Below, piece after piece: positions 2,427 through 64,000 of a stretch of 64,000 bases of DNA. A model generated the notes under the pieces. That model was not told the DNA's origin and made no database searches. It saw nothing but the letters and a program-made list of their open reading frames with translations. The stretch spans positions 1 through 64,000 of the forward strand of contig NW_021834346.1 in the NCBI RefSeq assembly GCF_006345805.1, given 5' to 3'. The position numbers were made by a program, and so were the translations under genes. The first letter of the stretch is position 1, and each line of letters begins with the position of its first letter. The stretch comes from Octopus sinensis. Its lineage: Eukaryota.

Positions 2427-3173
2427 TCATTCTCGGCTCGCAACATAATGGTCGACGTCTACTAACTCTATAACGTCAGCCGTTATGGGATCGTCAACCA
2501 CATGCATGTTAACATCCGGAGGAACGTGCCAGCCACGAGTGCTAGGATGTGAATCGCTACGAGCTTCCTCGAATGAGTGGGAAGTGAAAGAGTTTCTAGA
2601 AAGAAAAAATCTAAAATCTTTACGAAAATTCGAACTTGAGCACCCTGAATGAGCGTGTGAATAGTTAATTTGTGTGGTCTTTGAGAGTCGAAAGTCCTCG
2701 ACAAAACATCTCTTGATTGTTTCATTGAAATTATAGTGGGTGCTGAAATGTTCACTAAGAAACATCCAAACAAGCATAGTGAGAGAATAGTGTCTGAGAA
2801 GCTCAATGGTATGATCCCAAGAGTTTTCATATGCTTGCAAACTATCATAAGTGGGAGTGATGTAACGATCCAAACAGTAAAGAAGTGCGAAATAGAGCAC
2901 ACAAATAACTAGGAAGGTTAAAAGACCAAACAAACCAATTCTTAAGAGCTTAAGAATAAGTGAGAAAAAAGACTCGGAAAGAAAGCTTGTTACATGGGTA
3001 GGAAAACTCAAAAAAAGAAACAAGATAGCTCTCACAAAATTTTAGGACAAAATGAAAAATGTGGCAAGAATGGGCTAAACAACGTTGAAAAAGAGAAACG
3101 CGACAAGCGACACGCTTGGGTATTCACACGGTAGGCCAGCCGTCCTCGCAGGCTACCTGAATAGGGCTGACAT
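2427..3173 (-). pseudogene. Intronless multi-transmembrane ORF of unknown family, 248 codons, interrupted by three TAR stops
   Basis: ATG at 3173 is in frame with ORF 2427-3035: MSALFR*PARTAGLPCEYPSVSLVAFLFFNVV*PILATFFILS*NFVRAILFLFLSF...; several hydrophobic segments; GC higher than flanks. Confidence 0.45.
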
Positions 3174-10739: not shown

Positions 10740-12724
10740 CAGTCAACCCTCTCTATAGTGAACCCTCTCAATAGTGAACAGGCCATATTAATGCAATCTA
10801 CAATAACAAATATTAGTAATTTTCATTAATATATTTATTATAAAATGAATACCACGTTTAAAAATGTATAATATCATTTATTTAAATATATTTGTGTTCA
10901 CTATTAAAGAATAGTGAACGTCAAATTCTTGTGAACATAAAAATATTAAATTTAATATTTTTACATATATATTTAAAATTCTTTAAAATGAATAAACTAC
11001 ACGTTTTACAGTTGTTAGCATGGTGGAAAATCGAAAACGCCTGTCATTTTTTCAAAAGAAGGAAATAATCAAATTTTATCATAAAAATAGACATTACACA
11101 CAGCGCGATTTATCCCTTTATTTCAATGTTTCTCTGGGCTGCATAAACAAAATTTTGAAAAATTCTGAAGGAATACTTAATGTTCAAGATGACCAAAAAA
11201 AGAAGAAAATTTACTTGCCCAAGTCTCAACCATTCGACAGAGATCTATTTGAATGGTTCGTTAAAAAACGATCATTTGGATTTACAATCAATGAATATCT
11301 TTTGAAGTCCATGTCTCTAAAAATGGCGAAAGTTTGTAATATTCAAGGATTTCAAGCATCAAATGGATGGCTTGAGAAATTTAAAAATCGATATTGCATT
11401 GCTTCCCGTGCTTTATGTGGGGAAAATCAATTTGTTGAAACCTCTGTGATTGAAAATTTTACAGAAAGCCTCAATAGAAAATTAGAACAATATTGTTCTA
11501 AAAATATTTTTAATTTGGACGAAACTGGATTGTTTTTTAAACTTTTGTCGAACAGAACATTAGCTGTTGACTCGGACAAAAATCTGTCTAATAAACCGAT
11601 AAAAGAAAGAGTAACTGTTATGTTTTGCGTTAGTATGATGGGAGAAAAACTTGACCCATTTGTTATTGGAAAAGCCAAAAATCCACGCTGCTTTAAAGGA
11701 AGAAGAAATTTAATTAATAATTTACAAGTGGAATACAAATCAAATAAAAAAGCATGGAAGACATGGTTATTTCTCAGAATGGCTCATAGATTTGAACAAA
11801 AAAATGATTTTGCAAAAAAGAAAAATTCTAATTCTACTTGATAATGCGACTGTACACTCACGTGATTTAGAGTTCAGTAACATCGAACTCTTTTTCCCCT
11901 CCAAATACAACATCGAAGTTACAACCCCTTGATCAAGGAATAATAAAATCATTCAAAGACAGGTATAGACAACTCCTATGTGCACACTTGATTGAATTTT
12001 ATACTAATGATGACAATGTAGATCACGAAAAAGTTACAGAAAAGTTGAAGAAATTCACTCTATTGAATTGCTTGATATTCATAAATCAAGCTTGGTTAGA
12101 AGTGTCAGAATTAACAATTACAAATTGTTTCAAGAAAGCATTTGAAAATGCGTTAATACAGAACCTGACAGAAATAGAAGAAATAGATGATGAAAATTTT
12201 TTGATTCATGAAAATGATCAATTTGACGACGAAAACTTTATACAAAACTTTGCGAGAAAACTAAAACAGCAAGACCAAGTTGAAGAGGAAAATGAAAAAA
12301 TTTATGTTCCGACACTATATGAAGCTAGTGAATATGCGAAGGCGCTTGAATTTTGGTTTCTTGAGAATGATTATGAACAAAGACGAAAAGTATACGAAAT
12401 ACAAAAAATTTTAAGAAATTATCAAACTAATCATTCTCAAAAAATCACCGATTACATGATTAAAATCTCTAAATAATCTTTGTAATTTTTTTTTTAATGA
12501 AATCAATGTAATTAAATGTGATAAAGTTAGTTAGAGGACTTCCCCGCTTCGTAAATGAGAGAAACAGTTACCTCGTACGATGGCAAGGGAAATCCTCAAG
12601 GAAATCTTTGTAATTATACTTTAATATTGTTTATTGTTATTTGGATTCTTTTTGTTCACTATAGACAATAGTGAACATGATGTTTTGACGTGGACATTTT
12701 GTTCATTATAGAGAGGGTTGACTG
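10740..12724 (+). mobile_element. Full-length Tigger/pogo DNA transposon with frameshifted transposase
   Basis: TIRs CAGTCAACCCTCTCTATA / TATAGAGAGGGTTGACTG and TA TSD. ORF 11020-12476 has CENP-B HTH (ASNGWLEKFKNR) and DDD motifs NLDETG, LLDNA, QPLDQG; frameshifts near 11760 and 11895. Confidence 0.95.
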
Positions 12725-12804
12725 TATATTAATGGTTCTACATCAATTAAAAATTTATTGTTAAAACCGAACAAGAATGATTAGAGTAATTATTGTTAGT
12801 AAGT

Positions 12805-13222
12805 TTATTTAGCACCCTAAAACTTAATGAATATAAAATACATACATAAACGATTACGTCGTCCATGGGTTTTGTAGTTTCAGTAGATTTAAATTTGGTC
12901 GTTTCTTTAAAATAGGTCAATTAATGAGGCCAATACCAGTTGGATCTGGCTCTTCAAGTTCCCTTATTGCTATATCAACTGCTGGTGACATTGCATTTAA
13001 CCCTGAATTACGATGCTTATATTTTATCAGTTATTTTTTTACTTTCGGAATGATTTTGTTTTTTAACGCTTTAAAGAAATTCAAAGCTATAGATGGTTCT
13101 AAGTTATATGTTGAAGTTTGTTTCCCGTTTCCAAGATCGATTTCAACGTACATTGTACGCACAAGAAAAAACAGAATTGAAAAAATCTAGGTATTAAAAA
13201 AGTGAAACACCAAGAAAATCAT
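12805..13222 (-). CDS. Small secreted protein, paralog 1 (5 exons, 101 aa, unknown family)
   Basis: Exons 13222-13211, 13186-13043, 13015-12937, 12904-12846, 12816-12805; GT-AG introns of 24, 27, 32, 29 nt. MIFLIFSILFFLVRTMYVEIDLGNGKQTSTYNLEPSIALNFFKALKNKIIPKHRNSGLNAMSPAVDIAIRELEEPDPTETTKFKSTETTKPMDDVIVYGAK*. The frame is preserved in paralog 2. Confidence 0.8.
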
Positions 13223-13529
13223 GGTATTCAAGATTGTTCTATATTTTATTTATTTTTTCGATTTAAGGTTATATTATTAAAAAATTTCGCATAATTATAA
13301 AAAAATTAAAATATAATAATTTTATTATCAGTTTTCATTGCCAATATTAATTCTAAGTTTTAATATAATTACTGCGGCAGCAAAAAATTAGATTATCAAG
13401 CTAAAATTTTTAATTTATTCATTTTACGATGAAATTATTTTTAATATTTAAATTTCTTTTTTTTGATTTATTTTAAAGTAATTTATATTATTCCCCTAAA
13501 AAATTGATTTTTTATTTTAATAAAACAAA

Positions 13530-14110
13530 GAATCGCGATCTCTCTCAGTGTCGGGCTGAAAATCTGCCAGGCGCACAAATGCCGCTGTGGGGGAACTGTT
13601 GACAAGTACGGTTTGCACCCCCTCGCCTGCCGTCGGAGTGCCGGTCGTGCCCCCCTTCACAGTGAACTCAACTCGATCATATAGAGAGCCCTTGCTTCCG
13701 CCGGCGTCCAATCAATCCTTAACCTGTTGGACTGGATCGAGAGGACGGCAAACGCCCAGACGGCATGTCCACCTTTCCATCTTCTCTTATTTGGGATTCT
13801 ACCTGCTCGGACACGTTTTCATTCAGAAATATTGCTCTGTCCGCCGCCGATCTTGGGAACGCTTCGAGGCAGGCCGAGGATCGAAAGATTCTCAAGTACG
13901 GCAAACTTTCCAACTCGCTGTTCTTTACTACAATCGCCGTGGAGTCCTCCGGGATCTTCGGCTTTAAGACACTTCGCTTCCTTTGCTCGCTCGGTCGACG
14001 GATTTCAAGGACAATTCACAATTCAAGAGAGTCATCTTGGTTCCTGGAACGTCTGTCGATTGCTGTGATCCGAGGGAACGTAATTTATATAGATATCGTC
14101 AGCATTTGAA
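13530..14110 (+). mobile_element. CRE-clade non-LTR retrotransposon 3' fragment (CCHC finger + RLE endonuclease)
   Basis: CRCGGTVDKYGLHPLAC...[14 protein letters not shown]...LIWDSTC...AVESSG...ERLSIAVIRGN. Confidence 0.8.
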
Positions 14111-17183: not shown

Positions 17184-18380
17184 CAGTAAACCAAAATAAA
17201 AAACGAACACTACATTTTTCAAAAAAAATATCTAAATAGAATTTTAACAATATATAAACAATAACTAATATTTTTATTTTTGCAAAAAAAATATATTTAC
17301 CGCCTTTTACGGCAAAAGTATAATCTGAACCAAAATAAAAAACGAACAAAATTTTATTTACAAATTAAAATTTAGTATGCCCACCACGTGTCGCAATTAC
17401 AGACAATATTCGTTCACTCTACCAATGATTTTGCATAATCTACTCCTATCTCATTCCAAATTTTTGTAATTCTTCAAAAAGTTCCTCTTTTTTGGAATAC
17501 GATTTCCCCCTTATTTTTGCCTTCATATAGCTCCATACGTGTTCAATGGGGGTTAAGATCCGGGCTTTGCGCTGGCCAAGGTAGCAATTCGATATTATTA
17601 GTCTCAAAGAATATTTTTGCAAGCACACATGTGTGTTTTGGGTCGTTGTCCTGTTGAAAAATTTGATCAATAATCCTATTTTTCCAGAAATGGCAACAAA
17701 TTGTTTGCCAAAATGTTAACATACAATGATTCATTCATTATTTTTTTATCCAAACCAGATTACTAAAATATTCAGACGTTAATGCACCACATATCATCAC
17801 ACTTCCTTTTCCAAATTTTACGGTTTCAATAATATTACGTGAAACAAACTTTTCGGATTGTTGTCTCCATACAAATCTTCGTCCGTCGTTGTTTACTAAG
17901 TTGAATTTGCATTCGTCGCTGAATATAACGTGATTTCAATAAGTAGATGGTAGCATATTCCATCTTTGACAGATTTCCATTCTTCGTTCTTTGTGTTTTT
18001 AGTAAGATGTGGTCTTTTAGTAGGCGGAAATGCTTTTAAACCTCTTTGTTTTAGTGTATTTCTAATTGTTTCAGGTGTTACATTTTTTCCAGTTTCTTCT
18101 TTCAGTGCCTTCGCATATTTTACGCAATTAAAATTTGGATCTTCAATCCTTGCCTAATTGATTTTTTAATATCTTGTTCATTTAGGAGCCGGGGACGACC
18201 AGAACCATATTTTCTTGTGCTTGGAATATTTTGTTTATATTTTCGAATTGTTTTCGATATGGTATCAAGTGATCTTCTACACCATCTTTTAGTTATACGT
18301 TGTATTACGTTGTATTTTTTTTAATATCAAATATTTTTCTCCTCCTTTTTATCGATATTTAAATATTTTTCTTTTTATTA
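17184..18380 (-). mobile_element. Tc1-family transposon, one end lost
   Basis: TA-CAGTAAACCAAAATAAAAAACGAACAC terminus with an internal copy near 17326; motifs IFSDE, FQQDNDPKH, WPAQSPDLNP. Confidence 0.85.
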
Positions 18381-18720: not shown

Positions 18721-18789
18721 CTACGCCGCTAATGTTATTTATAACCTTAGGTGTGACCCTAGGTGTGTAAAAGAATCACTTACAACGAA

Positions 18790-19070
18790 TTGTCTTCTTC
18801 CAGAAAAAAATATTTTTGACTAACAGCCGAGAAGTTTAGAAAAGTAAGAATAAAAATGGTTCCGCATGTCGCGTCCCAAACAAGCAAATTTCCACATTTG
18901 AAGGGAAAGATCGTCATTTCATCTGAGCATTTCCCGCCTTCGCAATCAAGCCCAACAGATTCAAACATTAGCCGCATCGTATACTCTTTTAGAGATTTCA
19001 TTAGAAACTTCCAGCACTGTAATTGCAGGAGACGGGATGAAGATAATGTAGCTGTTCCGAGACAATGAAA
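18790..19070 (-). mobile_element. CRE-clade fragment
   Basis: MFESVGL...MTIFPFKCGNLLVWDATC. Confidence 0.7.
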
Positions 19071-19301
19071 TGTTTAGTATAATAACTATTTTTTGTATTT
19101 AGATAATTGACCCTACCGATCCGAACATTAACAATAGATAAACTAAAAATCACTATTAGTTTTCAAATTTTTTGAAAATGTTCAAAATTCAAAATTGTTC
19201 CAATTTCTCGATTTGCTAAAATTTTGTCTTATTTTTAATCAATTAATAATTTATTAAAGCCGAACAAGACTGGTTAAAATAAATATTGTTAGTAAATTTA
19301 T

Positions 19302-19755
19302 TTAAGCACCCTAAAACTTAATGAATATAAAACACATACATTAAGGATGAAGTTGCCAAAATATTTTGTAATGTCAAATGTAAAATCAATTAATGACGAC
19401 AATATATTATTCTTTGTGAATTTAGATTTGGTCGTCTCTTTAAAATAGGTCAATTAATGAGGCCAATACCAGTTGAATTTAAATTTTCAATTTTCCTTAT
19501 TGCTATATCAACTGCTGGTGACATTGCATTTAACCCTGAATTACGATGCTTATATTTTATCAGTTATTTTTTTACTTTCGGAATGATTTTGTTTTTCAAC
19601 GCTTTAAAGAAATTCAAAGCTATAGATGGTTCTAAGTTATATGTTGAAGTTTGTTTCCCTTTTCCAAGATCGATTTCAACGTACATTGTACGCACAAGAA
19701 AAAACAGAATTGAAAAAATCTAGGTGTTAAAAAAGTGAAACACCAAGAAAATCAT
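19302..19755 (-). CDS. Small secreted protein, paralog 2 (5 exons, 113 aa)
   Basis: Same four intron positions and sizes (24, 27, 32, 29 nt). MIFLIFSILFFLVRTMYVEIDLGKGKQTSTYNLEPSIALNFFKALKNKIIPKHRNSGLNAMSPAVDIAIRKIENLNSTETTKSKFTKNNILSSLIDFTFDITKYFGNFILNGA*. Exon 4 is 39 nt longer than in paralog 1 and stays in frame. Confidence 0.8.
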
Positions 19756-19855
19756 GATATAAATTATTCAAGATTGTTCTATATTTTATTTATTTTTTTG
19801 ATTTAAGGTTATATTATTAAAAAAAATTTCGCATAATTATTAAAAAATTAAAATA

Positions 19856-21674
19856 CAGTGAATCCTCGCAAATTGGCCATTTCTGGTACATAGAGATTTT
19901 ATGGCCAATTTGAGAAAATGGCCAATTTGAAAAAAATCAATATTTAAAAAATAAAATAAACACGTTTAAATTTTATTAAAATAAAATTCAATCCCTAATT
20001 CCTTTTTATTTGCTCTTTTTACATTTTCTTTGTATTTTCTTATTGCAGTAATCAGCGAAACATCATTCTCATTTTCTGCATTACAGTAAAGTTGCCTTTC
20101 TATTCTAGTTAATGTCTTTGCAATATCTTTTCTATCGAGTGGATATATGATTTTTGTCTCTTCGTCGCTAATTTCAGACTCTTGATCCTCTTGTAAACAA
20201 TTTTCGTTTATATCTTGATCTTCTGTGTTTTCGATATTTAGAAAATCTTCGCTCATTAGAGGATCGAAAATGTCAGTTCTTTCAATTTCAGTCTCATAAT
20301 GTTCAATTAATGTATTTTCGTGATTAGATTCATTTAAAATCTTAAAACATTTTGAATAGTTTCAGTAGATACGTCATCCCAAGCCATATTAACAAACAAA
20401 ATTGCATCTTTTAATGTCAATTTTTTGTATGAATTGTATACAGAAATATTTTCAGTCTCCAGCAAATCAGTTAAGTACTGTAGCTTTCTTCTCATGAAAT
20501 GAGTCTTGAAGGTTTTTATAATTCCAATATCCATTGGTTGTAGTAATCCAGTAGAATTTTTAGGAAAAATAAAATCTTAATACAATCCAAGTTTTGAGGA
20601 ATAGAATGTGCAGGACAGTGGTCTATTAGCAATAAAATTTTCTTCTTTTTAATTTTAAGCTGGAGATCAAAGCTAATAATCCAATCAATAAAAATAGATC
20701 CAGTCATCCAAGCTTTCTGTGAGCTATAATATGAGACAAGACATCCATAGTCAAAATTTTAAAACATCTAGGCATTTTTGGTTTTCCAATCATCACAGGT
20801 TTCAATTTATGACTTCCGGTCATGTTTGAACAAAGCATAATAGACACACGGTCTTTAAAATTTTTGTATCCTTGGAATCGGTTTCTGCATACGCTTTTCG
20901 ATGGAATAAGCTTGTAGTATAATGCAGTTTCATCCAAATTATAAATTAGATCAGGCTTATACGATTTAGAAATTTCTTTAAATTCTTCACGAAAAGAATT
21001 AATGTCAACTACTTTATCTGTTCGCATCTCTCCATGTAATTTTAGCATTCTAAAACCGTGTCTCTTTTTGAATTTTGCCAGAAATCCATTAGAATTTTTA
21101 AAGTTACTAAGTTGTAGCTCTTCGGCAAAATGCGCAGCCTTACACGATATTAAGGAATCATTTAAAAAACCACCTAAAAATTGGTTTTCAATTAATACCT
21201 TTAGACTCTATTGTATCCATCCATTCGATCAATTTTTCTTCAAGCGTAGGAAATTTTGGTTTGTGAGCAGCTTTATACGAATTTTGATAGATTTTCGAAT
21301 CCCGTAAAATAGAGTCTTTATTAAGCAGTAGATTATTGATCGTCTTTCTCGAGATCGTCTTGTGGAATAAATGTGAGAATCTGTCAGCCAGAAGCTGACA
21401 CGAAACACTGTCATTTTCTTCCTTGTAGTTTATAATTTGTGTTTTTTCAAGAAAAGTGAGCCGAGTATAACGTCCACGAGAAATTTTATAAGACATGTGA
21501 TTAAAAAAATAGTTTATTTTCTAATTAAAAAAAATAATAATTCAAAAATTGTGGCCAATTTGAGAATTGGCCAATTTACTAAGAAAATTAATTTTTTTCT
21601 TAGTAAATTGTGAAAAAATTGGCCAATTTAAAAATGGCCAATTTGCGAGGTGGCCAATTTGCGAGGATTCACTG
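19856..21674 (-). mobile_element. Full-length Tigger/pogo transposon (second family), decayed ORF
   Basis: TIRs CAGTGAATCCTCGCAAATTGGCCA, TA TSD, subterminal TGGCCAATTT repeats; motifs YNLDETA, LLIDHCPAH, MDIGIIKTFK. Confidence 0.95.
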
Positions 21675-22349
21675 TATAATAATTTATAAATTTCAAAATT
21701 GTGGCCAATTTAAAAATTACCTAAGACAGTCACTAACCCAGGTTCCGCCAGTGACAAAAATTAGATTCATCCAACCTGGATGAAAAAAATCACGTGCAGG
21801 AGTACATTAATTTTTTTCTTAAAAAAAAACTGTCACGTAATCAGATGTAATTAAAAAAATGATAAAAAATTATCCTATATAACACAGTCAGTGGAAATTC
21901 TTTTAGAAAACTCGCAAACATTGTTTGATTTTGTCTCTTAAATCATACTAATCTTTCATAATAGAAGTTTAACACCAGCCGCGAATAAGCTATATTTATA
22001 AACTTTAGAGTGTTAAGTTCACAATACTTTACGGTGAGTACTTGCATCTTATAATAATCATGTCTAATAAATCTCGTTTGAAGCTTCTTGATAGAAACTT
22101 TCACCATAAGAGGATTAAATGATGAACTTAGTACCTGGGGATTTACAAAAAAATCATATTTGTCGCTGGATTCTTTCAAAAAAATCAGTTAGGAAGAATC
22201 ATTGGCATATATTGGCCACACAAAATATCCAATGAAAGTCTTTATAAAATGTGCAGTTTGCGGCCTATAAATATTGATCTGCTGAAAAGCCGTTGGATAA
22301 ACCGAAACCTAGTCTAGTTGAATTGGAACAAAATGACAATATTCAATGT

Positions 22350-30776: not shown

Positions 30777-33700
30777 TAGGGCAACCACAAAGTTGACCTA
30801 AAAAAAGCAAAAATTGACCTCCATAAAGTCAACAAAATTGATTCAAAAAAGATGAAAGTTGACCAGAATGTAAACCTAAAAAAAGTTTTTCAGATAATTT
30901 TTATGCAATATTTTTTTCTAGAAACATGAATTATATAGAATCATATAATATTTGACGTTTTCAGTTTTAAAATTTCGGTCTTTGGCCAAAATTTTATGAA
31001 GAACTGAAAACGAGCGCTCTACTGAACACGTAGTGGCCTGACACTGGAGTAGTTGAAACTTTTCCAAAGGCAAAAAAATTCCATCTCCGTTAACAATTTT
31101 TAAAATTTCATTCGTGTTCAATCTCTTTTCGACATATTCATTTATTTTACATGTATCTTTTTTGAAATCGAGTTTTCTCAGAAAATTGTATGCTTTTTGG
31201 ATAGAAAAGTTCCTTGACTCAATTTCACTAAGAACATCAACGAGTGGGGAATATTGATTCCATATCTCCTTAAATCATTAAGAAGTCCTTTATTTTTTAT
31301 TGATTCCATTGCTCTCCAAATCAATATGGATTCTCCTTTTAGCGAATTGCATATTTCCAACACTCTGGGAAAATTTTCCCCATAGTACTTGATTGCTCGG
31401 AGCCAGCTTCCCCATCTAGTAACAATAGGTTCTGGAGGTAGTCCTATTTCAGCAAATAGTTGCCTTCGACTATTATTTTTCAAAACAAGTCTTTTTATAG
31501 AGGCAATTAAGTTATCCACTACAGGATAATTTAGTTTTATCCTTAATGCACAATTGTGAATTAAATGTGCAATACATGTTACGTGGAATAAATTAGGATA
31601 CAAATTTTTTAGTGTTTTTCCTGCTGAAATCATATACTTTGCCGCGTCGGTTAATAACAAATAAAAATTTTTCCTCTCAACATTTGCACATCGAATCATC
31701 CACAATCTGACATAGAATTGACGCATTAAGCGAAGAATTTAATGGTACACAACCAATAAGATAGCTGATTTGGGGATCCGTTTTTTTCCCAATAAGAATA
31801 TTTACATATTTTTCACTACCAGCGTCAGTCTCATCCACGATTAAAAAAATTTTTTCATTAATTAATGTCGCGCGCAATGAGATGAAACGCGTGCCTAAAG
31901 TGAAACGCTGTGAACCTTGAGAAAACCACAAAAAACCTCGAAAATAAAATTAACAATCTTTGATGAAAACAGGAATAAACCGAGAAATAATTTTTTATTA
32001 TTATCGTTTGAAAGATTAACAATTTATTTAAATAATGGTAGCCAATTTAAAATTACCAAAAAGTTAAAAATATTTTAACCTGAAAATTTACCTGTCTAAA
32101 TTTTTTAACTTGTGATTAAATACTATTTTTTCATTTCCATCTTGATTTTATTTTAACTCTATTATTTGAAATTAAATCTCAACAGTAAAGATTTGTTGAT
32201 GATAAAAAGATTCTAATTTTGCTTCTTCGTCCTTTGATTTGTATCAAAATCTTTTTTCAGCTAACACATTATTTCAATTGCAATTTCTTTCAAGTTAAGT
32301 TCTCGCCGCTGGAACTTAACTATTTTCGGTGTTAATTGTTAAAAAAAAATCAAAACAAAAAAAAAAAAAATTTCTTTCAATGTTTTTGAAAAATTTCGTT
32401 CCATTCTTTCAAGATATTTGTCATTTATGATAGTTTGATTTTCATGTTCTTCAATTAATTCATCATCATTATAATAAGAAATGTTATATCCTCTTGTTCG
32501 GAAAAAAGCCATAAATGGTGACATATTTATAGAAGAATGAATTGAAATATTGTACTGATATACAATTTTTTCTAACACGTCCACCCATTTTTTCTGTTTG
32601 TCTGTGAGTTCTTTTTGAATCCATCTGCAAATGGTTTGATTGCAACGCTCCACTTGTCCCTGTGATTCTGGATGTCTTGGACGTCCCCTTTTATGAATTA
32701 TTTTAAATTCTTCACATAATGACGTTATTTCTGAATTAACAAATTCTGTTCCGTTGTCAGACTGCAGAATTTTTGGTGGACCATAGGAAAGAAATATAGT
32801 TTTCAATGATTCCGAAACTGTAACTGCTTCTTTATTTTCTATTTTTTTAGCAAAGCAAAATTTTGAATAAATATCTATGACATTCATAAGATATTTATAG
32901 GAATCATTTATATCTGCATAAAACGAAAGATCGACTAAATCAATTTGATAGCTAAAAATAAGCTATTGAATGAACCGTTCTCGAGGTTCTTTGGCTACTA
33001 TGTTGACTAGTGGATATTTTGTCTTTAAGGGCTGACTTCGCTGACATTTGTGGCATGATGATATTACATCCCTAATTATGTTTCGATTGATTATGCAAAA
33101 ATTATTTTTGCAATACTCTTCCATTTTATTAAATCCATAGTGATAAATTGAATGAATCCTTTCACAATGCAGTTTCATGGATTCGAAATCATTTGAGGCA
33201 ATTACCAATATTTTGTTTCCATCAGATTGTTTATAATATAGCACACCTATCATTAGATTTAATAGTACCTCCAGAATTTACGAAATTTCTACATTTTTTG
33301 AGAAAACGAAATCTTTTTAGTCTTGAAAAATCTTCTGGTATTGTATTATTTATTAAAAAAATCAAGAATATTCTTATACTCCTGATCATCCTTTACAATG
33401 TTGGCAAATCTCATTTCGATAATATTATCTCAAAGTGCGCAATCATCTTTAATATTGACTTGATAATTGTCAAGAGCTTAATTGAAGGTTAAATTCAAGG
33501 TCACGGCGTTTCACTTTAGGCACGCGTTTCATTTATGGCGCGTGACAATTAACAAGCTGATTATCTCATCGACACGTCTTTCGGCCAAAATTTTGACATT
33601 ATTTCGGCATTTGGATTCTAAAGGGTAACTCGAATCCGATAGTATTAAAAAAATTGATTAATGCAGGATTCCTTAGTTTATATAAAAAAATATTTGCTGA

Positions 33701-36113: not shown

Positions 36114-36839
36114 TATTATAATTACTTTTGGTAATTTTTTGTTAAGTTTCTTGAATATATTAATTAAAAAAACATTTCAAATGAATATTGATTTTTTAAG
36201 TGCCGGGAGAAAAAAAAACTCAGTTTTAGGTACCGCGAGCACAAAAAGGTTGGGAAACGCTGCTGTAAACGTTAATCTATCTCAAGAAATAACAGAAAAT
36301 TTATTAAATCTGAAATATGATTTTGAAGCTAAAGTCATTTTTAATAAACATGGATATCATCAATTCTGGATTACATATAGAATCGTAAATATGGAATGAA
36401 GTTTATTTCAATCTTCTATACGGGAGTCTCTTTAAACTTTCGTGCTCCAGCCCTTGAGAAGCAAGATCGTCAATCATGAAATAACTGAACACTTACGCTG
36501 GAAAAATTATTTAGAGACCTGAAGGAACACCGAATCATCAAGTGAATTCGAAACTTGTTAATTTGCTCAAATCGAAAGGTACTTTGGAAAACCGCAAAAG
36601 AAGATGTCATGTCGAGTCTATTAAATACTGCCTGAGATTGAAAAAATCAAATCTATTATCGCAAAAATGGCCAAGTCTGAGGTCGAAAGTAAATGGAGGT
36701 CAGAATGCCAAAAAATTAACAAACGAAATGCTAATTTCTGGAAAATATCCCGATGTCTTAGCAAAAATGATGCCAAGGGAGTTGAAATCTCGCTAAAAAA
36801 CCAGATGATAAATACATTCGCTCTGATCTCGTCCCGGAT

Positions 36840-37330
36840 GCACTCAGAGATCAATTCAGTCGGGTAAACAAGATCGATTCCGCCGTTCCTTTCTTCTACA
36901 CATGCCACGAGCACCCTTGTCCAAGAGATTCTCCAACCCGTTACCGAATCTTCTATGGACTCAAAGTCAGTCTTTACGGAAAGTCGCTGTCTTGAGTTGT
37001 CTCTTGAGCTTCCGCAGAATACGCACACACAGAAAGAATGTGACAGGATCCTCTGTGACCAGGTGCCAGAGAAGTTCCAGACGCCTCCCTCGACATTCGC
37101 CCTGAACGACATAATCAAGCGGATTCTCGAAACTGTCGGATTACCATTACAGTTGGAATCGGTCGGCCTGGTTCGGGAGGATGGTAAACGTCCTGATGGC
37201 CTAACAACTTTCCCCTTTGAAAATGGCAAGTCTCTCATCTGGGATGCAACTTGTATGGACACCTTCTCTGCTGGTAACATCTTTACGTCAGTCGGAAAGC
37301 CGGAGCTCTCTCATAAACACAAACTCATGT
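36840..37330 (+). mobile_element. CRE-clade fragment
   Basis: QKECD...LNDIIKRIL...[34 protein letters not shown]; a related snippet lies at 38290-38360. Confidence 0.8.
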
Positions 37331-52551: not shown

Positions 52552-53886
52552 TCAATCAGACAAAAATATCTCATCTGGATTGACATCCCCATCACACCCT
52601 GTATCCCAATAATGTCCCTCATTGGGATCACTCACCCCAAAAACCTCACAAAACCTAACTGTCTGCCAATTAGGTCTAAATCTCCCGTCCGTTACCAACC
52701 CCCTCTTGATATTCTCCACTCCCAAGTCACTCATACAACTAGTCCCCAACAAATCCTCGACTTCCTGTGTCCTAACAATAATTCCCAACACACACTCAAT
52801 TCGCGGAGACACTTCCAAATCTCTAAAATTCATTTTTTGGTATTTTTTAAGAATCTTCAACCATTCCAAATCATATTTGATTTCCATGTCTCCATTGATG
52901 ACATTTGAAGGAATATCCACCACCTTAAACCCCTCAAAAAACCACTTTACCTGCAAAAATCGACGACCAGGCAAACATTTGTCCAATGCCAAAAATCTCG
53001 TTACGTCATCACTCGCCTGTGAAATTGAAAATGTTACGTAACATCAGAATGCTGGACTTGTGCAGCAAAATGGACATGGTAATGAGCAGAAAACCAAAAT
53101 GAAGGTTTTTGTTCGTACAAAATCTTGTTTAAGGGACCACTTCCGAAGGTACCGTTTTTTATATCTTCATAGAAGAACGGCTTCCTTTGAAGTAGTAGAG
53201 ACAAGTCGCCATGAGGACATATCGAAGAAGGCCAATCATGTGATAACATAATATCAATTTTTGACGAATTCTATTTATATTATTTTTTTATTAATTATAT
53301 AATTAAATTAAACATACTTTTAATAAAAGGTTTAGTTCATTTTGTCTGTAGTGGTACACACTCCTAATCGAGGACGGGTTATATGGCGGATATTCCCAAC
53401 GCTTTAGACTGTAATTCCTCATATTAAAAATCCCAGATAAGCCTGCAATTCGAATACCATTAATATTAATAATTCCCACATAGCCTAACAATATATATCC
53501 CCAATACCCATATAGTATATATTTGGGGCCACAAAACCACCAAATGGGAGTTCTTGTAAGTAATTTGAGGCCTCGTGGTTCCCTCCAATAAATATTGTCA
53601 AAATTGGCGCTGTTTTCTGGCCGCTGTAGTATCTTAAACATTTTATTTAATTATAACTTGTGGAAATCCATCATTTTTCTATATTTTTGGGGGACCGACA
53701 TTGAGTCCAAGTCAGAACTATAGAATAGTATTGTTTTATCAATTATTACGGGCATCTAACTGCTTGGAAGTCTCCACATATTAGGATTAGGTCTATTTTA
53801 GTAGATTTTAACTTTTCTAAGTTCTGTACTGTTTCATAAATCTCGTCTAATGCACCGTGACCACAACCAACAACAGCGACTTTCAT
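52552..53886 (-). CDS. DBR1: RNA lariat debranching enzyme, 7 exons
   Basis: [55 protein letters not shown]; introns of 32, 25, 23, 47, 26, 27 nt. Confidence 0.97.
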
Positions 53887-56400: not shown

Positions 56401-57470
56401 ATGCCAGTGATAGTGCCTATAACAATTGTCTTAATTTTACTCATATTCGTAATCTACAAAACTCAGCATTCCTCCAAGAGATGCACTAGCACTACAAAAC
56501 TGACTGGCAAGACCGTTATTGTGACAGGAGGGGCAGTCGGTTGGTCGTACTTTCACGACTTAGGGATCGGATATGAAATTACCAAGGATCTGGCTAGAAG
56601 AGAAGCCCGAGTGATCATGGGTTGTATCAACGTCCCAGTAGCAGAACGAGTTGCTTCAGAAATTCCGAAATGACAGGAAATTCAAACATTTCTGTAGTCT
56701 CGTTGGATCTTGCGTCGTTCGATTCCGTCCGTGAATTTGCTGCAAAAATTCGTCAAGAGGAAGAATGTATATACGCACTCATCCACAACGCTGGGCTTAC
56801 TTGTACGTTAAATACCATGCCTACTTTCAGTATTCAGTCACGTGGAAACCGTGGATGGACTCGAAACGGTAATGCAAGTCAATTTTTTCTCTCCATTTTT
56901 GTTAACCCATCTTCTTCTCGGTTTTTCTCAGTTTTAATTCCAGACAAATTGGTGGCCGGACAGCCCAGCAGAGTTGTATTTGTCAGTTCCATGGCTCATA
57001 AAATATCGGGAAAGATAAAGCCTGAGTTGCTTAGCGGGACTGTATTTAACACATTCAAACAGTATGGAAACAGTAAACTATGTCAAATCTATTTTTGCCA
57101 ATACATGGCTCAAAATATGCTAGAAAATGGTTCCCTGTCCTGATTATTTTGACAGTCTCTTTCAATGCCGTTCACCCTGGAACTGTCAATACTAATTTTT
57201 TTCAGAATTTCCCGTTCCCGTATATAGTGGGAAAACTGGCGGCACTGTTCGCTAAGGTTTTCTTACCATTTGAATTTGTAGACACCCGAACAAGGTGCTC
57301 AAACTGTAATATATGCGACGGTGGACGAAGGACTTCAAGTTTCTGGCAAGTATTTGGAGGACTGCCAACTTTCCACACCTTCCAAGGAAGCTTTCGACCC
57401 GAAAATGCAACTTGCAGTGATCGAAGCAGCCAACGCCGTCACGTCTATTAATAAAACAACTTTGTTTTGA
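56401..57470 (+). CDS. Short-chain dehydrogenase/reductase, RDH11-14-like, 6 exons, with one apparent frameshift
   Basis: N-terminal TM anchor, TGGAVG|IG, LDLASFDSV, HNAG, YGNSK, VHPGTV, TPEQGAQT; introns 23-28 nt; 1-nt frame break near 56665. Confidence 0.9.
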
Positions 57471-59512: not shown

Positions 59513-60792
59513 CAGTGCATGACAAAAGTAACCGGACAAGCCAAAATTTCCATTATTTTAAGTCATTTTAAAACTTTTTTCACATAAATCACCCTTTGTA
59601 CATTAATTTACACGAAAAACAATTTTTTACATTTTTAATTTAATCTTTTTTTCAATTGTACATTAAATTTAAAATTTTTCTTTTCATATATGCCCAGACG
59701 TGCTCAATGGGATTGAGATCAGGTGACTGGGCGGGCCATGAAAGAACTTTGATTTGATTTTCGTTGAAATATTCCGTCACAATTTTGCTTTGTGGCAGGG
59801 AGCATTGTCCTGTTGGAATGTGAAATCCGTTAAATTCATTTTTGCTGCAGATTCCATCAGGTTATTCGTCAACAAATTCACATATCGTCCACTGTTTAAC
59901 GTACCATCAAAAAAAAACTAAATTCCCCACTCCGTTGTATGAGATACATCCCCAAACCATTGTTTTACATTTCCATGTTTTACAGTTGGCAAGATATATC
60001 TAAATAAATATCAAATCAACTACTTTAAGGATTCCCCTTTCTTTCGGTAAACTATTCGAGATTTTTTATGCATAGATAATTGAAAAATTGATTCGTCTGA
60101 GAAAATTGTTCTCTTCCATTCTGCGTCCGAAATCATTAAAAAAATTTTAGATATGTTCCATCTATCCTTAACATTTTTTTTGGAGAGAAGGGTCTTTTCA
60201 TGGTTAATCTCCCAAAAATAATTATTTTCATTCAATAAACGAATTATTGTCCTTTTGGAAATGTCTTTTCCAAACTTTTCATGTACAAAGGAACGTAAAA
60301 CGTTTGAACTTTCATATGGATTTTCTACACTATGAGCAGTTAGCTCATCAGTTTCAATCTTAGAAAGTATTCTAGCTTTCCCAGAAACTGGAAGTCGTGA
60401 AATTATCATATTTTTCTTGTATTTTTCAAAAAATCGTGGATCGTCGATTTTTTGGTACAAGTAAGAGTGCTAATGCGTCTGATAGACATTCCTTGATTTT
60501 TAAAAACAATTATTTGTCCTTAAAACAAAATCTGACATGTGCTTACCCCTAAAAAAAAGGTTAAAAAAATGTAATTTTGGCGAAAAACTGAAAAGTGTCC
60601 GGTTACTTTTGTCACCTACATTTAATAAGTGTGCTTTAAATTTAATGGATTATTCAAAAAAAAAAATTAAAAAAGTAAATATATTATTTAATAAATATTT
60701 TAATTAATAAGAAGCTATTTTTTTAAAAAAGCATTAAAATTGGCTTAAATAATGGAAATTTCGGCTTGTCCGGTTACTTTTGTCGTGCACTG
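59513..60792 (-). mobile_element. Tc1-family transposon, both TIRs present
   Basis: TIRs CAGTGCAYGACAAAAGTAACCGGACAAGCC and TA TSD; extra internal copy of the TIR core at about 60597; motifs IFSDES, QDNAPCH, WPAQSPDLNPIEHVW. Confidence 0.93.
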
Positions 60793-60990: not shown

Positions 60991-61031
60991 ATAAGAATTA
61001 ATTCATTTAAAAAAAATTCAAAATTTTAATC

Positions 61032-64000
61032 AAATGCACGTTTGATACTGTTTCTCCATGAAAAATAAAGTAAATGAAGAACAATCTACTTAAATGCACG
61101 TTTGATACTGTTTCTCCATGAAAAATAAAGTAAAAGAGGAACAATCTACTTAAATGCACGTTTAATACTGTTTCTCCATGAAAAATAAAGTAAAAGAGGA
61201 ACAATCTACTTAAATGCACGTTTGATACCGTTTTGCCATAAAAAATAAAGTAAAAGAGGAACAATCTTTCTTAAATGCACGTTTGATACCGTTTCTCCAT
61301 AAAAAATAAAGTAAATGAGGAACAATCTACTTAAATGCACGTTTGATACTGTTTCTCCATGAAAAATAAAGTAAAGAGGAACAATCTACTTAAATACACG
61401 TTTGATACTGTTTCTCCATGAAAAATAAAGTAAATGAGGAACAATCTACTTAAATGCACGTTTGATACTGTTTCTCCATGAAAAATAAAGTAAAAGAGGA
61501 ACAATCTACTTGAATGCACGTTTGATACCGTTTCTCCATAAAAAATAAAGTAAATGAGGAACAATCTTTCTTAAATGCACGTTTGATACCGTTTCTCCAT
61601 AAAAAATAAAGTAAATGAGGTACAATCTTTCTTAAATGCACGTTTGATACCGTTTCTCCATAAAAAATAAAGTAAAAGAGGAACAATTTACTTAAATCAC
61701 GTTTGATACCGTTTCTCCATAAAAAATAAAGTAAAAGAGGAACAATCTACTTAAATGCACGTTTGATTCCGTTTCTCCATAAAAAATAAAGTTAGTGAGG
61801 AACAATCTTTCTTAAATGCACGTTTGATACCGTTTCTCCGTAAAAAATAAAGTAAAGAGGAACAATCTACTTAAATGCACGTTTGATACCGTTTCTCCAT
61901 AAAAAAAAAGTAAATGAGGAACAATCTTTTTTAAATGCACGTTTGATACCGTTCTCCATAAAAAATAAAGTAAAAGAGGAACAATCTAGTTAAATGCACG
62001 TTTGATACCGTTTCTCCATAAAAAATAAAGTAAAAGAGGAACAATCTTCTTAAATGCACGTTTGATACCGTTTTCTCCATAAAAAATAAAGTAAAAGAGG
62101 AACAATCTATTTAAATGCACGTTTGATACCGTTTCTCCATAAAAAAAAAGTAAAAGAGGAACAATCTAGTTAAATGCACGTTTGATACCGTTTCTCCATA
62201 AAAAATAAAGTAAATGAGGAACAATCTTTCTTAAATGCACGTTTGATACCGTTTTCTCCATAAAAATAAAGTAAAAGAGGAACAATCTAGTTAAATGCAC
62301 GTTTGATACCGTTTCTCCATAAAAAATAAAGTAAATGAGGAACAATCTTTTTAAATGCACGTTTGATACCGTTTCTCCATAAAAAATAAAAAGTAAAGTA
62401 AAAGAGGAACAATCTAGTTAAATGCACGTTTGATACCGTTTCTCCATAAAAAATAAAGTAAATGAGGAACAATCTATTTAAATGCACGTTTGATACCGTT
62501 TCTCCATAAAAAATAAGTAAAAGAGGAACAATCTTTCTTAAATGCACGTTTGATACCGTTTCTCCGTAAAAAATAAAGTAAATGAGGAACAATCTTTCTT
62601 AAATGCACGTTTGATACTGTTTCTCCAAAAAAAAAGTTAAAGTAAAAGAGGAACAATCTAGTTAAATGCACGTTTGATACCGTTTCTCCATAAAAAATAA
62701 AGTAAAAAGAGGAACAATCTATTTAAATGCACGTTGATACCGTTTCTCCATAAAAAATAAAGTAAAAAGAGGACACAATCTCTTTAAATGCACGTTTGAT
62801 ACCGTTTCTCCGTAAAAAATAAAGTAAATGAGGAACATCTTTCTTAAATGCACGTTTGATACTGTTTCTCCATAAAAAATAAAGTAAAAGAGGAACAATC
62901 TAGTTAAATGCACGTTTGATACCGTTTCTCCGTAAAAAATAAAGTAAATGAGGAACAATCTTTCCTAAATGCACGTTTGATACCGTTTCTCCATAAAAAA
63001 TAAAGTAAAAGAGGAACAATCTAGTTAAATGCACGTTTGATACCGTTTCTCCATAAAAAATAAAGTAAAAGAGGAACAATCTACTTAAATGCACGTTTGA
63101 TTCCGTTTCTCCATAAAAAATAAAGTTAGTGAGGAACAATCTTTCTTAAATGCACGTTTGATACCGTTTCTCCGTAAAAAATAAAGTAAAAGAGGAACAA
63201 TCTAAGTAAATGCACGTTTGATACCGTTTCTCCATAAAAAATAAAGTAAATGAGGAACAATCTTTTTTAAATGCACGTTTGATACCGTTTCTCCATAAAA
63301 AATAAAGTAAAAGAGGAACAATCTAGTTAAATGCACGTTTGATACCGTTTCTCCATAAAAAATAAAGTAAAAGAGGAACAATCTATTTAAATGCACGTTT
63401 GATACCGTTTCTCCATAAAAAATAAAGTAAAAGAGGAACAATCTTTCTTAAATGCACGTTTGATACCGTTTCTCCATAAAAAATAAAGTAAAAGAGGAAC
63501 AATCTACTTAAATGCACGTTTGATACTGTTTCTCCATGAAAAATAAAGTAAAAGAGGAACAATCTACTTAAATACACGTTTGATACTGTTTCTCCATGAA
63601 AAATAAAGTAAATGAGGAACAATCTACTTAAATGCACGTTTGATACTGTTTCTCCATGAAAAATAAAGTAAAAGAGGAACAATCTATTTAAATGCACGTT
63701 TGATACCGTTTCTCCGTAAAAAATAAAGTAAAAGAGGAACAATCTATTTAAATGCACGTTTGATACCGTTTCTCCATAAAAAATAAAGTAAAAGAGGAAC
63801 AATCTACTTAAATGCACGTTGATACTGTTTCTCATGCAAAGAAAAAAGAGTAAAAGAGGACAATCTACTTAAATACACGTTTGATACTGTTTCTCCATGA
63901 AAAATAAAGTAAATGAGGAACAATCTACTTAAATGCACGTTTGATACTGTTTCTCCATGAAAAATAAAGTAAAAGAGGAACAATCTACTTGAATGCACGT
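61032..64000 (+). repeat. 60-bp tandem satellite, about 49 copies, running off the window
   Basis: Consensus AAATGCACGTTTGATACCGTTTCTCCATAAAAAATAAAGTAAAAGAGGAACAATCTACTT. Confidence 0.98.

Follow-up and report, generated by a model that had tools for sequence, protein, structure and literature searches.

Mosaic divergence between two copies of a candidate orphan gene in a genome with ultra-short introns

Introduction

Short-tract ectopic conversion in small multigene families leaves mosaics in the sequences concerned. The locus described here, a unit (U) present twice in a 64-kb window (the whole stretch of DNA that was analysed, 64,000 nt), resembles such mosaics in that near-identical and divergent segments of tens of bases alternate and in that the divergence extends beyond replacement sites to synonymous and untranslated ones. 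It differs from them in having two members and no donor copy in the window, and in that its conserved islands coincide with predicted introns. Error-prone double-strand-break repair and replication template switching leave templated insertions and clustered changes. U shares with these a 39-nt segment that includes a 17/19 copy of nearby sequence, and multi-nucleotide differences within ~150 bp; unlike them, it has a 19-bp patch of substitutions with no local template and an indel that keeps the reading frame.

Among secreted peptides, snake venom PLA2 is an example of 'accelerated evolution'. Conus toxin superfamilies (PMC3862624) and mussel MgCRP-I (PMC4558851) are further examples of secreted peptide genes, with a conserved pre-pro region and conserved introns beside a hypervariable mature peptide. 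U is similar in that its N-terminal part and introns are conserved and its C-terminal coding part is highly divergent, and the product predicted from it is a small protein whose N-terminus is hydrophobic. Unlike conotoxin and venom-type genes, U has two copies, no cysteine framework, a 3' tail that is 12.5% diverged and a dN/dS that is not significantly above 1. Antigenic-variation and cassette families need many donor paralogs; U has variable segments bounded by identical runs of 39 and 36 nt, as such families would, and is seen in two copies in the 64 kb. An analogy with antigenic variation or recognition systems would be drawn from two copies and a candidate gene model whose spliced product has no homologue.

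Animal introns below 30 nt have been reported solely in myxobolid myxozoans and Dicyema japonicum, species in which the splice signals have shrunk to approximately GTa...AG (PMC13644364). Genes of these animals (PMC13644364, PMC6736024) are matched in the window by two genes, encoding an SDR protein and DBR1, with GT..AG introns of 23-32 nt, and by the candidate introns of U, which are of the form GTG/GTA...AG and lie in the same size range, with splicing of U being predicted. The window differs from the two published genomes in GC content (32.7%), which lies between them.

Results

Two copies of U in a transposon-rich region

U (~600 bp) was identified by self-BLAST and alignment in two copies in the 64-kb window, 6.5 kb apart. 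Copy A (12742-13322, minus strand) is uninterrupted. Copy B, delimited by self-BLAST, alignment and nhmmer, occupies 19238-19855 with its last 9 bp at 21677-21685 (minus strand), and is the copy that carries 19340-19495 (minus strand), the interval for which a first-pass annotation had claimed that exons diverge far faster than introns. A pogo/Tigger-like DNA transposon of 1,819 bp (19856-21674, minus strand) interrupts copy B, 9 bp from an end of the copy and ~100 bp upstream of the copy B ATG. Its TIR of 23 bp is perfect (CAGTGAATCCTCGCAAATTGGCC), its TA target is duplicated, and its transposase is fragmented. The counterpart of this insertion in copy A is an empty TA site at 13312-13313. 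A second pogo-like transposon (10740-12724, plus strand; TIR CAGTCAACCCTCTCTATAATGAAC, TA duplication) stops 17 bp before the start of copy A, which is the minus-strand 3' end of that copy, and an internally deleted pogo relative (14494-~15130) lies 1.2 kb from copy A. The pogo/Tigger-like elements form two families with different TIRs, and all members are flanked by TA. Inclusion of the pogo element in the duplicated unit was considered and rejected, given the empty TA site in copy A and the 1.2 kb that separate the other pogo copy from copy A.

The homology borders of U are sharp at both sides, and the surroundings are mostly transposon remains. On the minus strand, AATAAA is found ~12 nt before the end of U homology. 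No third or partial copy of U was detected within the 64-kb window by nhmmer or low-stringency BLAST, and DNA-pattern scans of metagenome contigs and prokaryote genome contigs returned no copy. U had no Rfam or tRNA match and no similarity to other repeats of the window, and its ends showed no convincing TIR, TSD, LTR, poly(A) tail or tRNA-like head. U was accordingly not classed as a transposon of any kind considered (DNA transposon, MITE, LTR, SINE, Helitron), as it has no TIR, TSD or LTR.

One copy of a diverged three-copy repeat family with a '...WDxTCxDTF...' motif (13500-14110, plus strand; 18780-19100, minus strand; 36621-37280), which resembles a retroelement protein as judged by eye, adjoins each U copy. 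The two adjoining copies lie on opposite sides of U and in opposite orientation, which places them outside the unit. The motif TCAATTAA(T) is present at the extreme end of U (the plus-strand left end; 19240-19250 in B, 12742-12750 in A) and again inside U, twice in B (19386-19396, 19450-19460) and once in A (12917-12927). Its recurrence could be due to chance, the DNA being AT-rich, or the motif could serve in recombination or binding.

Ultra-short introns in the host genome

A retinol-dehydrogenase-like SDR gene (56401-57470, plus strand) requires five GT..AG introns for read-through, of 24, 28, 23, 26 and 25 nt (56540-56563, 56803-56830, 56921-56943, 57130-57155 and 57257-57281). Its spliced product matched animal RDH11/12/14 over 97% of its own length (E = 6e-40). 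The gene for DBR1, the lariat debranching enzyme (52555-53886, minus strand), has first introns of 32, 25 and 23 nt (53749-53718, 53657-53633 and 53507-53485). Very short introns are genuine in this genome, and the candidate introns of U (24-32 nt), which fall within the 23-32-nt range of the eight SDR and DBR1 introns, are of normal size here. The host is an animal whose ultra-short introns resemble those of myxobolid myxozoans or Dicyema, and is probably a parasite.

A control search with the SDR product gave a best protein-database match of 44% identity, from which it follows that the source genome and its relatives are absent from the protein databases and that null searches with U mean 'orphan' and not 'not a gene'. 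Look-ups of exact proteins for ORFs of the window gave no record. Near 56655-56665, between '...VASEI' and 'EMTGNSN...', the SDR gene contains a frameshift for which no intron accounts; it reflects either a pseudogene or a residual assembly indel.

Candidate genes on the two strands of U

A five-exon minus-strand model was rebuilt exactly in both copies of U. It runs from a candidate ATG at 19755 (B) or 13222 (A) to the stop, with the frame restored by GT..AG introns of ~20-35 nt; the four candidate introns measure 24, 27, 32 and 29 nt. In copy B, candidate introns 1 and 2 are at 19743-19720 and 19575-19549. Candidate intron 3 (32 nt; B 19469-19438, A 12905-12936; GTATTG...AAAG) holds an in-frame TGA and sits within a 39-nt run (19475-19437) that is identical between the copies. 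Candidate exon 4 (B 19437-19340, A 12904-12846) measures 98 nt in the former copy and 59 nt in the latter. It is followed by candidate intron 4 (29 nt; B 19339-19311, A 12817-12845; GTATGT...TTTTAG), through which the frame is open in both copies, so that this intron is not required to keep the ORF. The predicted spliced products are of 113 aa (B) and 101 aa (A), have an N-terminus that is hydrophobic as judged by eye, and lack cysteine altogether. No homologue of the 113-aa product was found among 5.8 billion proteins, in Pfam or among PDB sequences. An alternative intron of 74 nt that would place the patch of substitutions inside an intron is possible in both copies, and was rejected as longer than every verified intron.

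ORF lengths were compared with those of dinucleotide shuffles of U (n = 150). With up to four introns of 20-35 nt, the best possible minus-strand ORFs of U reached 130-134 codons; none of the 150 shuffles reached 113 spliced codons and one reached 101, the 99th percentile being 90. Real 618-bp segments of the window, which are mostly transposon-derived, gave spliced ORFs of at least 113 codons in 20% of cases. With splice signals this weak, the splice sites of U do not confirm the gene model, since such models are easy to build. One minus-strand frame, the same in A and B, remains open throughout the diverged exon 4, including its 39-nt indel, and no plus-strand frame stays open there in both. 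Codon-position composition (purine-rich position 1, G-poor position 2) was slightly closer to that of the SDR gene on the minus strand. A likelihood based on SDR-trained codon usage was tried as a strand test and set aside as too weak to decide: in cross-validation on the SDR gene itself it barely separated sense from antisense and thus had little power. GC content in U decreases from exons to introns to flanks, and is lower in the candidate exons (0.29-0.34) than in the exons of two verified host genes (0.38-0.43). U most likely carries now, or carried recently, a small orphan minus-strand gene.

On the plus strand, an uninterrupted ORF of 88 aa is present in both copies (B 19457-19723, A 12924-13190). 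The two versions are identical except in the patch, where residues 7-13 read GSGSSSS in A and EFKFSIF in B. An intronless ORF of 88 codons was reached in 0/150 dinucleotide shuffles. No homologue was found in 1.84 billion representative proteins, and no Pfam family was matched.

Distribution of differences between the copies

Copies A and B differ at 40 of the aligned columns of U, and the differences were counted by feature of the candidate model. The 5' flank has 3/91 differences and 2 indels. Exon 1 (0/12), intron 1 (1/24), exon 2 (2/144) and intron 2 (0/27) are nearly invariant; exon 3 has 8/79, all at 19476-19494. Intron 3 is identical (0/32), exon 4 differs at 17/59 columns in addition to a 39-nt segment present in B only, intron 4 at 1/29, and exon 5 at 0/8 with a 1-nt indel. 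The 3' tail has 8/64 differences (12.5%) and a 3-nt indel. Several of the A-B differences are homopolymer-length indels.

The resulting pattern is a mosaic. The 5' ~470 bp are roughly 98.5% identical between the copies, and in the 3' third identical islands alternate with segments that are 12-40% different (6/298 differences in the 5' part versus 34/271 in the 3' part, P = 6e-7). The clustering reported by the first-pass annotation is real: for at least 8 of the 40 differences to share some 19-column window, P = 0.003, and for the two identical runs in the diverged 3' third, of 39 and 36 nt, P ~1e-4. The first of these runs coincides with candidate intron 3, and the second with exon 5 together with most of intron 4. 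They bound the variable segments, which is a description of the pattern and does not by itself demonstrate recombination.

The individual counts in that annotation were also all borne out. Apart from the patch, three scattered differences separate the copies from the ATG through intron 3; intron 3 is identical and intron 4 has a single difference; and the lengths of exon 4 differ by exactly 39 nt, with the frame open in both copies. Exon 4 had been called unalignable after its first codons, which does not hold, as one 39-nt gap yields 71% identity over the 59 common columns. The headline that exons diverge faster than introns is true of exon 4 and of the last part of exon 3 but not of exons 1-2, whose conservation equals that of the introns (2/156 versus 2/112, Fisher P = 1); it is further weakened by the divergence of the non-coding 3' tail, which the annotation did not mention. 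The observation is thus real and statistically sound, though narrower than its title and modest; it was partly confirmed, and the interpretation given to it partly supported.

Substitution rates per exon were estimated on the two copies by the Nei-Gojobori method. Exons 1-2 gave dN 0.008 and dS 0.031. Exons 3-4 gave dN 0.226 and dS 0.145 (4 synonymous changes over 30 sites), a ratio of 1.56 that is not significantly above 1 and depends on just those 4 synonymous changes.

The 19-bp patch and the 39-nt segment

The patch (B 19476-19494, A 12943-12961, minus strand) contains 8 substitutions in 19 bp, all of them amino-acid-changing in the minus frame, as had been annotated. The minus-strand reading is KIENLNS in B (19474-19494) and ELEEPDP in A (12941-12961), and under the predicted minus-strand model the N-S-T sequon that the first-pass annotation described does arise in B. 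All 8 sites are G/C in A and A/T in B, likewise in agreement with the annotation. Read on the plus strand from A to B, the changes are three G>A, three C>T, one C>A and one G>T; on the minus strand of B, the 8 sites are four A and four T. A general AT-decay of copy B was rejected as the cause, since differences outside the patch are balanced (14 G/C>A/T versus 12 A/T>G/C).

No second copy of either version of the patch, and no donor for exon 4 of copy A, is present in the 64-kb window. The patch of A had no local template match (P = 0.98 direct, 0.70 inverted). The patch of B matched sequence 57 nt away at 12/13 positions, which in this AT-rich DNA is not significant (P = 0.24), and an internal 60-nt tandem repeat as the source of the patch was dropped on that ground. 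The idea of an internal repeat was kept for the 39-nt insert alone. The 39-nt B-only segment (19378-19416, minus strand, with a placement that depends on the alignment) contains TCAATTAATGACGACAATA, a 17/19 copy of TCAATTAATGAGGCCAATA (19450-19468), which lies 64 nt away and consists mostly of candidate intron 3. In shuffles, a partial copy of this quality had P = 0.011-0.018.

Two specific mutagenic processes were considered for the patch and rejected. A deaminase-type cluster (APOBEC/RIP-like) does not fit, as both strands are hit and two of the changes are transversions, so that strand coordination is absent. Mutagenesis of the kind driven by diversity-generating retroelements does not fit either, as the patch is not adenine-specific and no dedicated reverse transcriptase lies beside either copy. 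A local process of mutation, complex or, as the first-pass annotation had proposed, targeted, agrees with the data, but the patch does not fit the deaminase and retroelement forms.

Discussion

We tentatively prefer, at somewhat less than even confidence, to read U as a two-copy, probably minus-strand orphan gene-like unit whose 3' third was rewritten by a few multi-nucleotide events. U would be a lineage-specific unit, present twice in a transposon-rich region, and the differing segments would have arisen from a few such events and not from site-by-site selection on the protein. The events may have been short-tract ectopic conversion from family members outside the window, complex repair, or both. 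One such event is still partly visible in the 39-nt segment, part of which is a copy of sequence 64 nt away. The mosaic with its statistics, this local partial duplication and the tiny introns of the genome are results; that U is a gene, which strand it uses for coding, and that conversion is the cause are inferences.

Two features of the divergence point in this direction. Synonymous sites and the 3' tail have diverged along with the replacement sites (dS 0.145 in exons 3-4 and 8/64 in the tail, against 2/112 in the introns), which is not what selection on amino acids alone would give. Whole segments differ, and not just their replacement sites, which argues for events that replace or rewrite stretches of DNA. 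The diversifying selection proposed in the first-pass annotation is accordingly compatible with the dN/dS of 1.56 in exons 3-4 but is insufficient alone, and the segmental conversion that it also proposed agrees with the data, although neither the window nor the external scans supplied a donor. The non-random split of the mosaic (6/298 versus 34/271, P = 6e-7) and the nearby 17/19 template for the 39-nt indel favour the preferred reading as well. Its gene component draws on the ORF lengths relative to shuffles, the preserved frame, the codon composition, the gradient in GC, the AATAAA close to the end of U homology and the finding that tiny introns do occur in this genome. Several results weigh against it. 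The window has neither a donor for either version of the patch or for exon 4 of A, nor a third copy; random conversion tracts do not explain why the islands coincide with predicted introns 3 and 4; the gene has no homologue; and on the other strand there is an ORF of 88 aa that is just as intact. Weak splice signals also make GT..AG pairs easy to find, 20% of window segments match the ORF length, and the codon-usage test has little power.

A possible though rather unlikely alternative is that U does not code at all, and is instead an uncharacterised mobile element, part of such an element, or a pair of dead pseudogenes. Its ORFs would then be relics or due to chance, and the patches would be ordinary complex mutations (templated filler indels, replication template switches) in AT-rich DNA. 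The sharp homology ends amid transposons would be expected of such a repeat, as would the presence of open ORFs on both strands with no homologue on either, the ease with which spliced ORFs of equal length arise in real segments of the window (20%) under weak splice signals, and an insert of 39 nt partly copied from nearby; the GC of the candidate exons (0.29-0.34) is also below that of real host exons (0.38-0.43). Set against this, U showed neither TIR nor LTR ends, nor a target duplication, a poly(A) tail or a tRNA-like head, and it is unlike the other repeats of the window. Its ORFs exceed those of essentially all shuffles on both strands (0/150 at 113 codons or above, 1/150 at 101 or above, and 0/150 for the 88-codon ORF), and its frame survives both an indel of 39 nt and a divergence of 29%.

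The interpretation put forward in the first-pass annotation, a small secreted protein family with active diversification of the C-terminal exons around fixed introns, is unlikely. The drivers would be positive selection, cassette conversion from a pool of paralogs, or targeted mutagenesis, and U would then resemble antigenic-variation or venom-peptide genes. It is the sole reading that naturally explains the coincidence of islands and introns, in which the identical islands at the borders of the variable segments correspond to predicted introns 3 and 4. That 8/8 changes in the patch alter amino acids, that the indel is a multiple of 3 with the frame open in both copies, that dN/dS is 1.56 in exons 3-4 and that the N-terminus is hydrophobic are all in keeping with it, as is a host that is probably a parasite with tiny introns. 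Diversification of this kind is nevertheless poorly served by a sample of just two copies, by a dN/dS computed on 4 synonymous changes, and by synonymous sites and a 3' tail that have diverged as well. The predicted products have no cysteine framework, known domain or homologue, part of the extra exon-4 sequence of B copies what is mostly the model's own intron 3, and a transposon sits 100 bp upstream of the copy B ATG.

A more specific proposal, that U belongs to a small secreted family in a myxozoan or dicyemid whose 3' exons are repeatedly rewritten, by short-tract conversion or exon-targeted mutation, around fixed introns of ~30 nt, is decidedly unlikely. Were it true, these exons would form a cassette for recognition or host interaction with no described counterpart in myxozoans and dicyemids.

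It is very unlikely that the intronless 88-aa ORF is the real gene and the minus-strand model its antisense shadow. In such a gene the patch would lie near the N-terminus. The plus-strand ORF is uninterrupted in both copies and longer than in any of the 150 shuffles, both differences outside the patch are synonymous in its frame, and third codon positions coincide on the two strands, which permits overlapping open frames. A plus-strand gene would, however, have neither homologue nor Pfam family and a slightly poorer fit in codon-position composition than the minus strand, and it leaves unexplained why the minus strand keeps an open, frame-preserving stretch through the diverged region. An assembly artefact, in which reads from near-identical family members were mixed into a chimeric consensus during long-read assembly or polishing, is extremely improbable: the SDR frameshift near 56660 fits residual indel errors and several A-B differences are homopolymer-length indels, but consensus errors do not typically take the form of 8 clustered substitutions or of a 39-nt segment, and both copies lie in distinct contexts with clean transposon junctions.

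What U signifies depends on which of these readings applies. As a two-copy repeat with patchy conversion, U would be an ordinary by-product of repeat evolution, and would illustrate how easily gene models arise where introns are 23-32 nt long and splice signals minimal. If the gene is real and has more members, the contrast between a conserved N-terminus with conserved introns and rewritten C-terminal exons would point to a secreted family that evolves fast in a strongly reduced parasitic animal, of relevance to host-parasite interaction. It would also bear on how the splicing of tiny introns constrains adjacent sequence.

Other features of the window

Further transposon remains were found on the minus strand (32339-32887, 31178-31726, 17446-17734 and 60020-60460); the types among them were a retroviral-type integrase core (rve), a DUF659 (hAT-associated) fragment, and Tc1/mariner-type DDE_3 and HTH_Tnp_Tc3_2 fragments. 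A 202-aa ORF (2427-3035, minus strand) gave a weak match to the Pfam nodavirus methyltransferase family (E = 7e-5), at 23 bits and thus below the curated cut-off of 30; it may be an endogenous RNA-virus-like fragment or a chance match. A ~60-bp tandem repeat array (60999-64000) comprises at least 36 copies, which are 62-91% identical to a reference copy, and reaches the end of the window. The 150-aa 'ORF' at 63383-63835 is a translation of this repeat.
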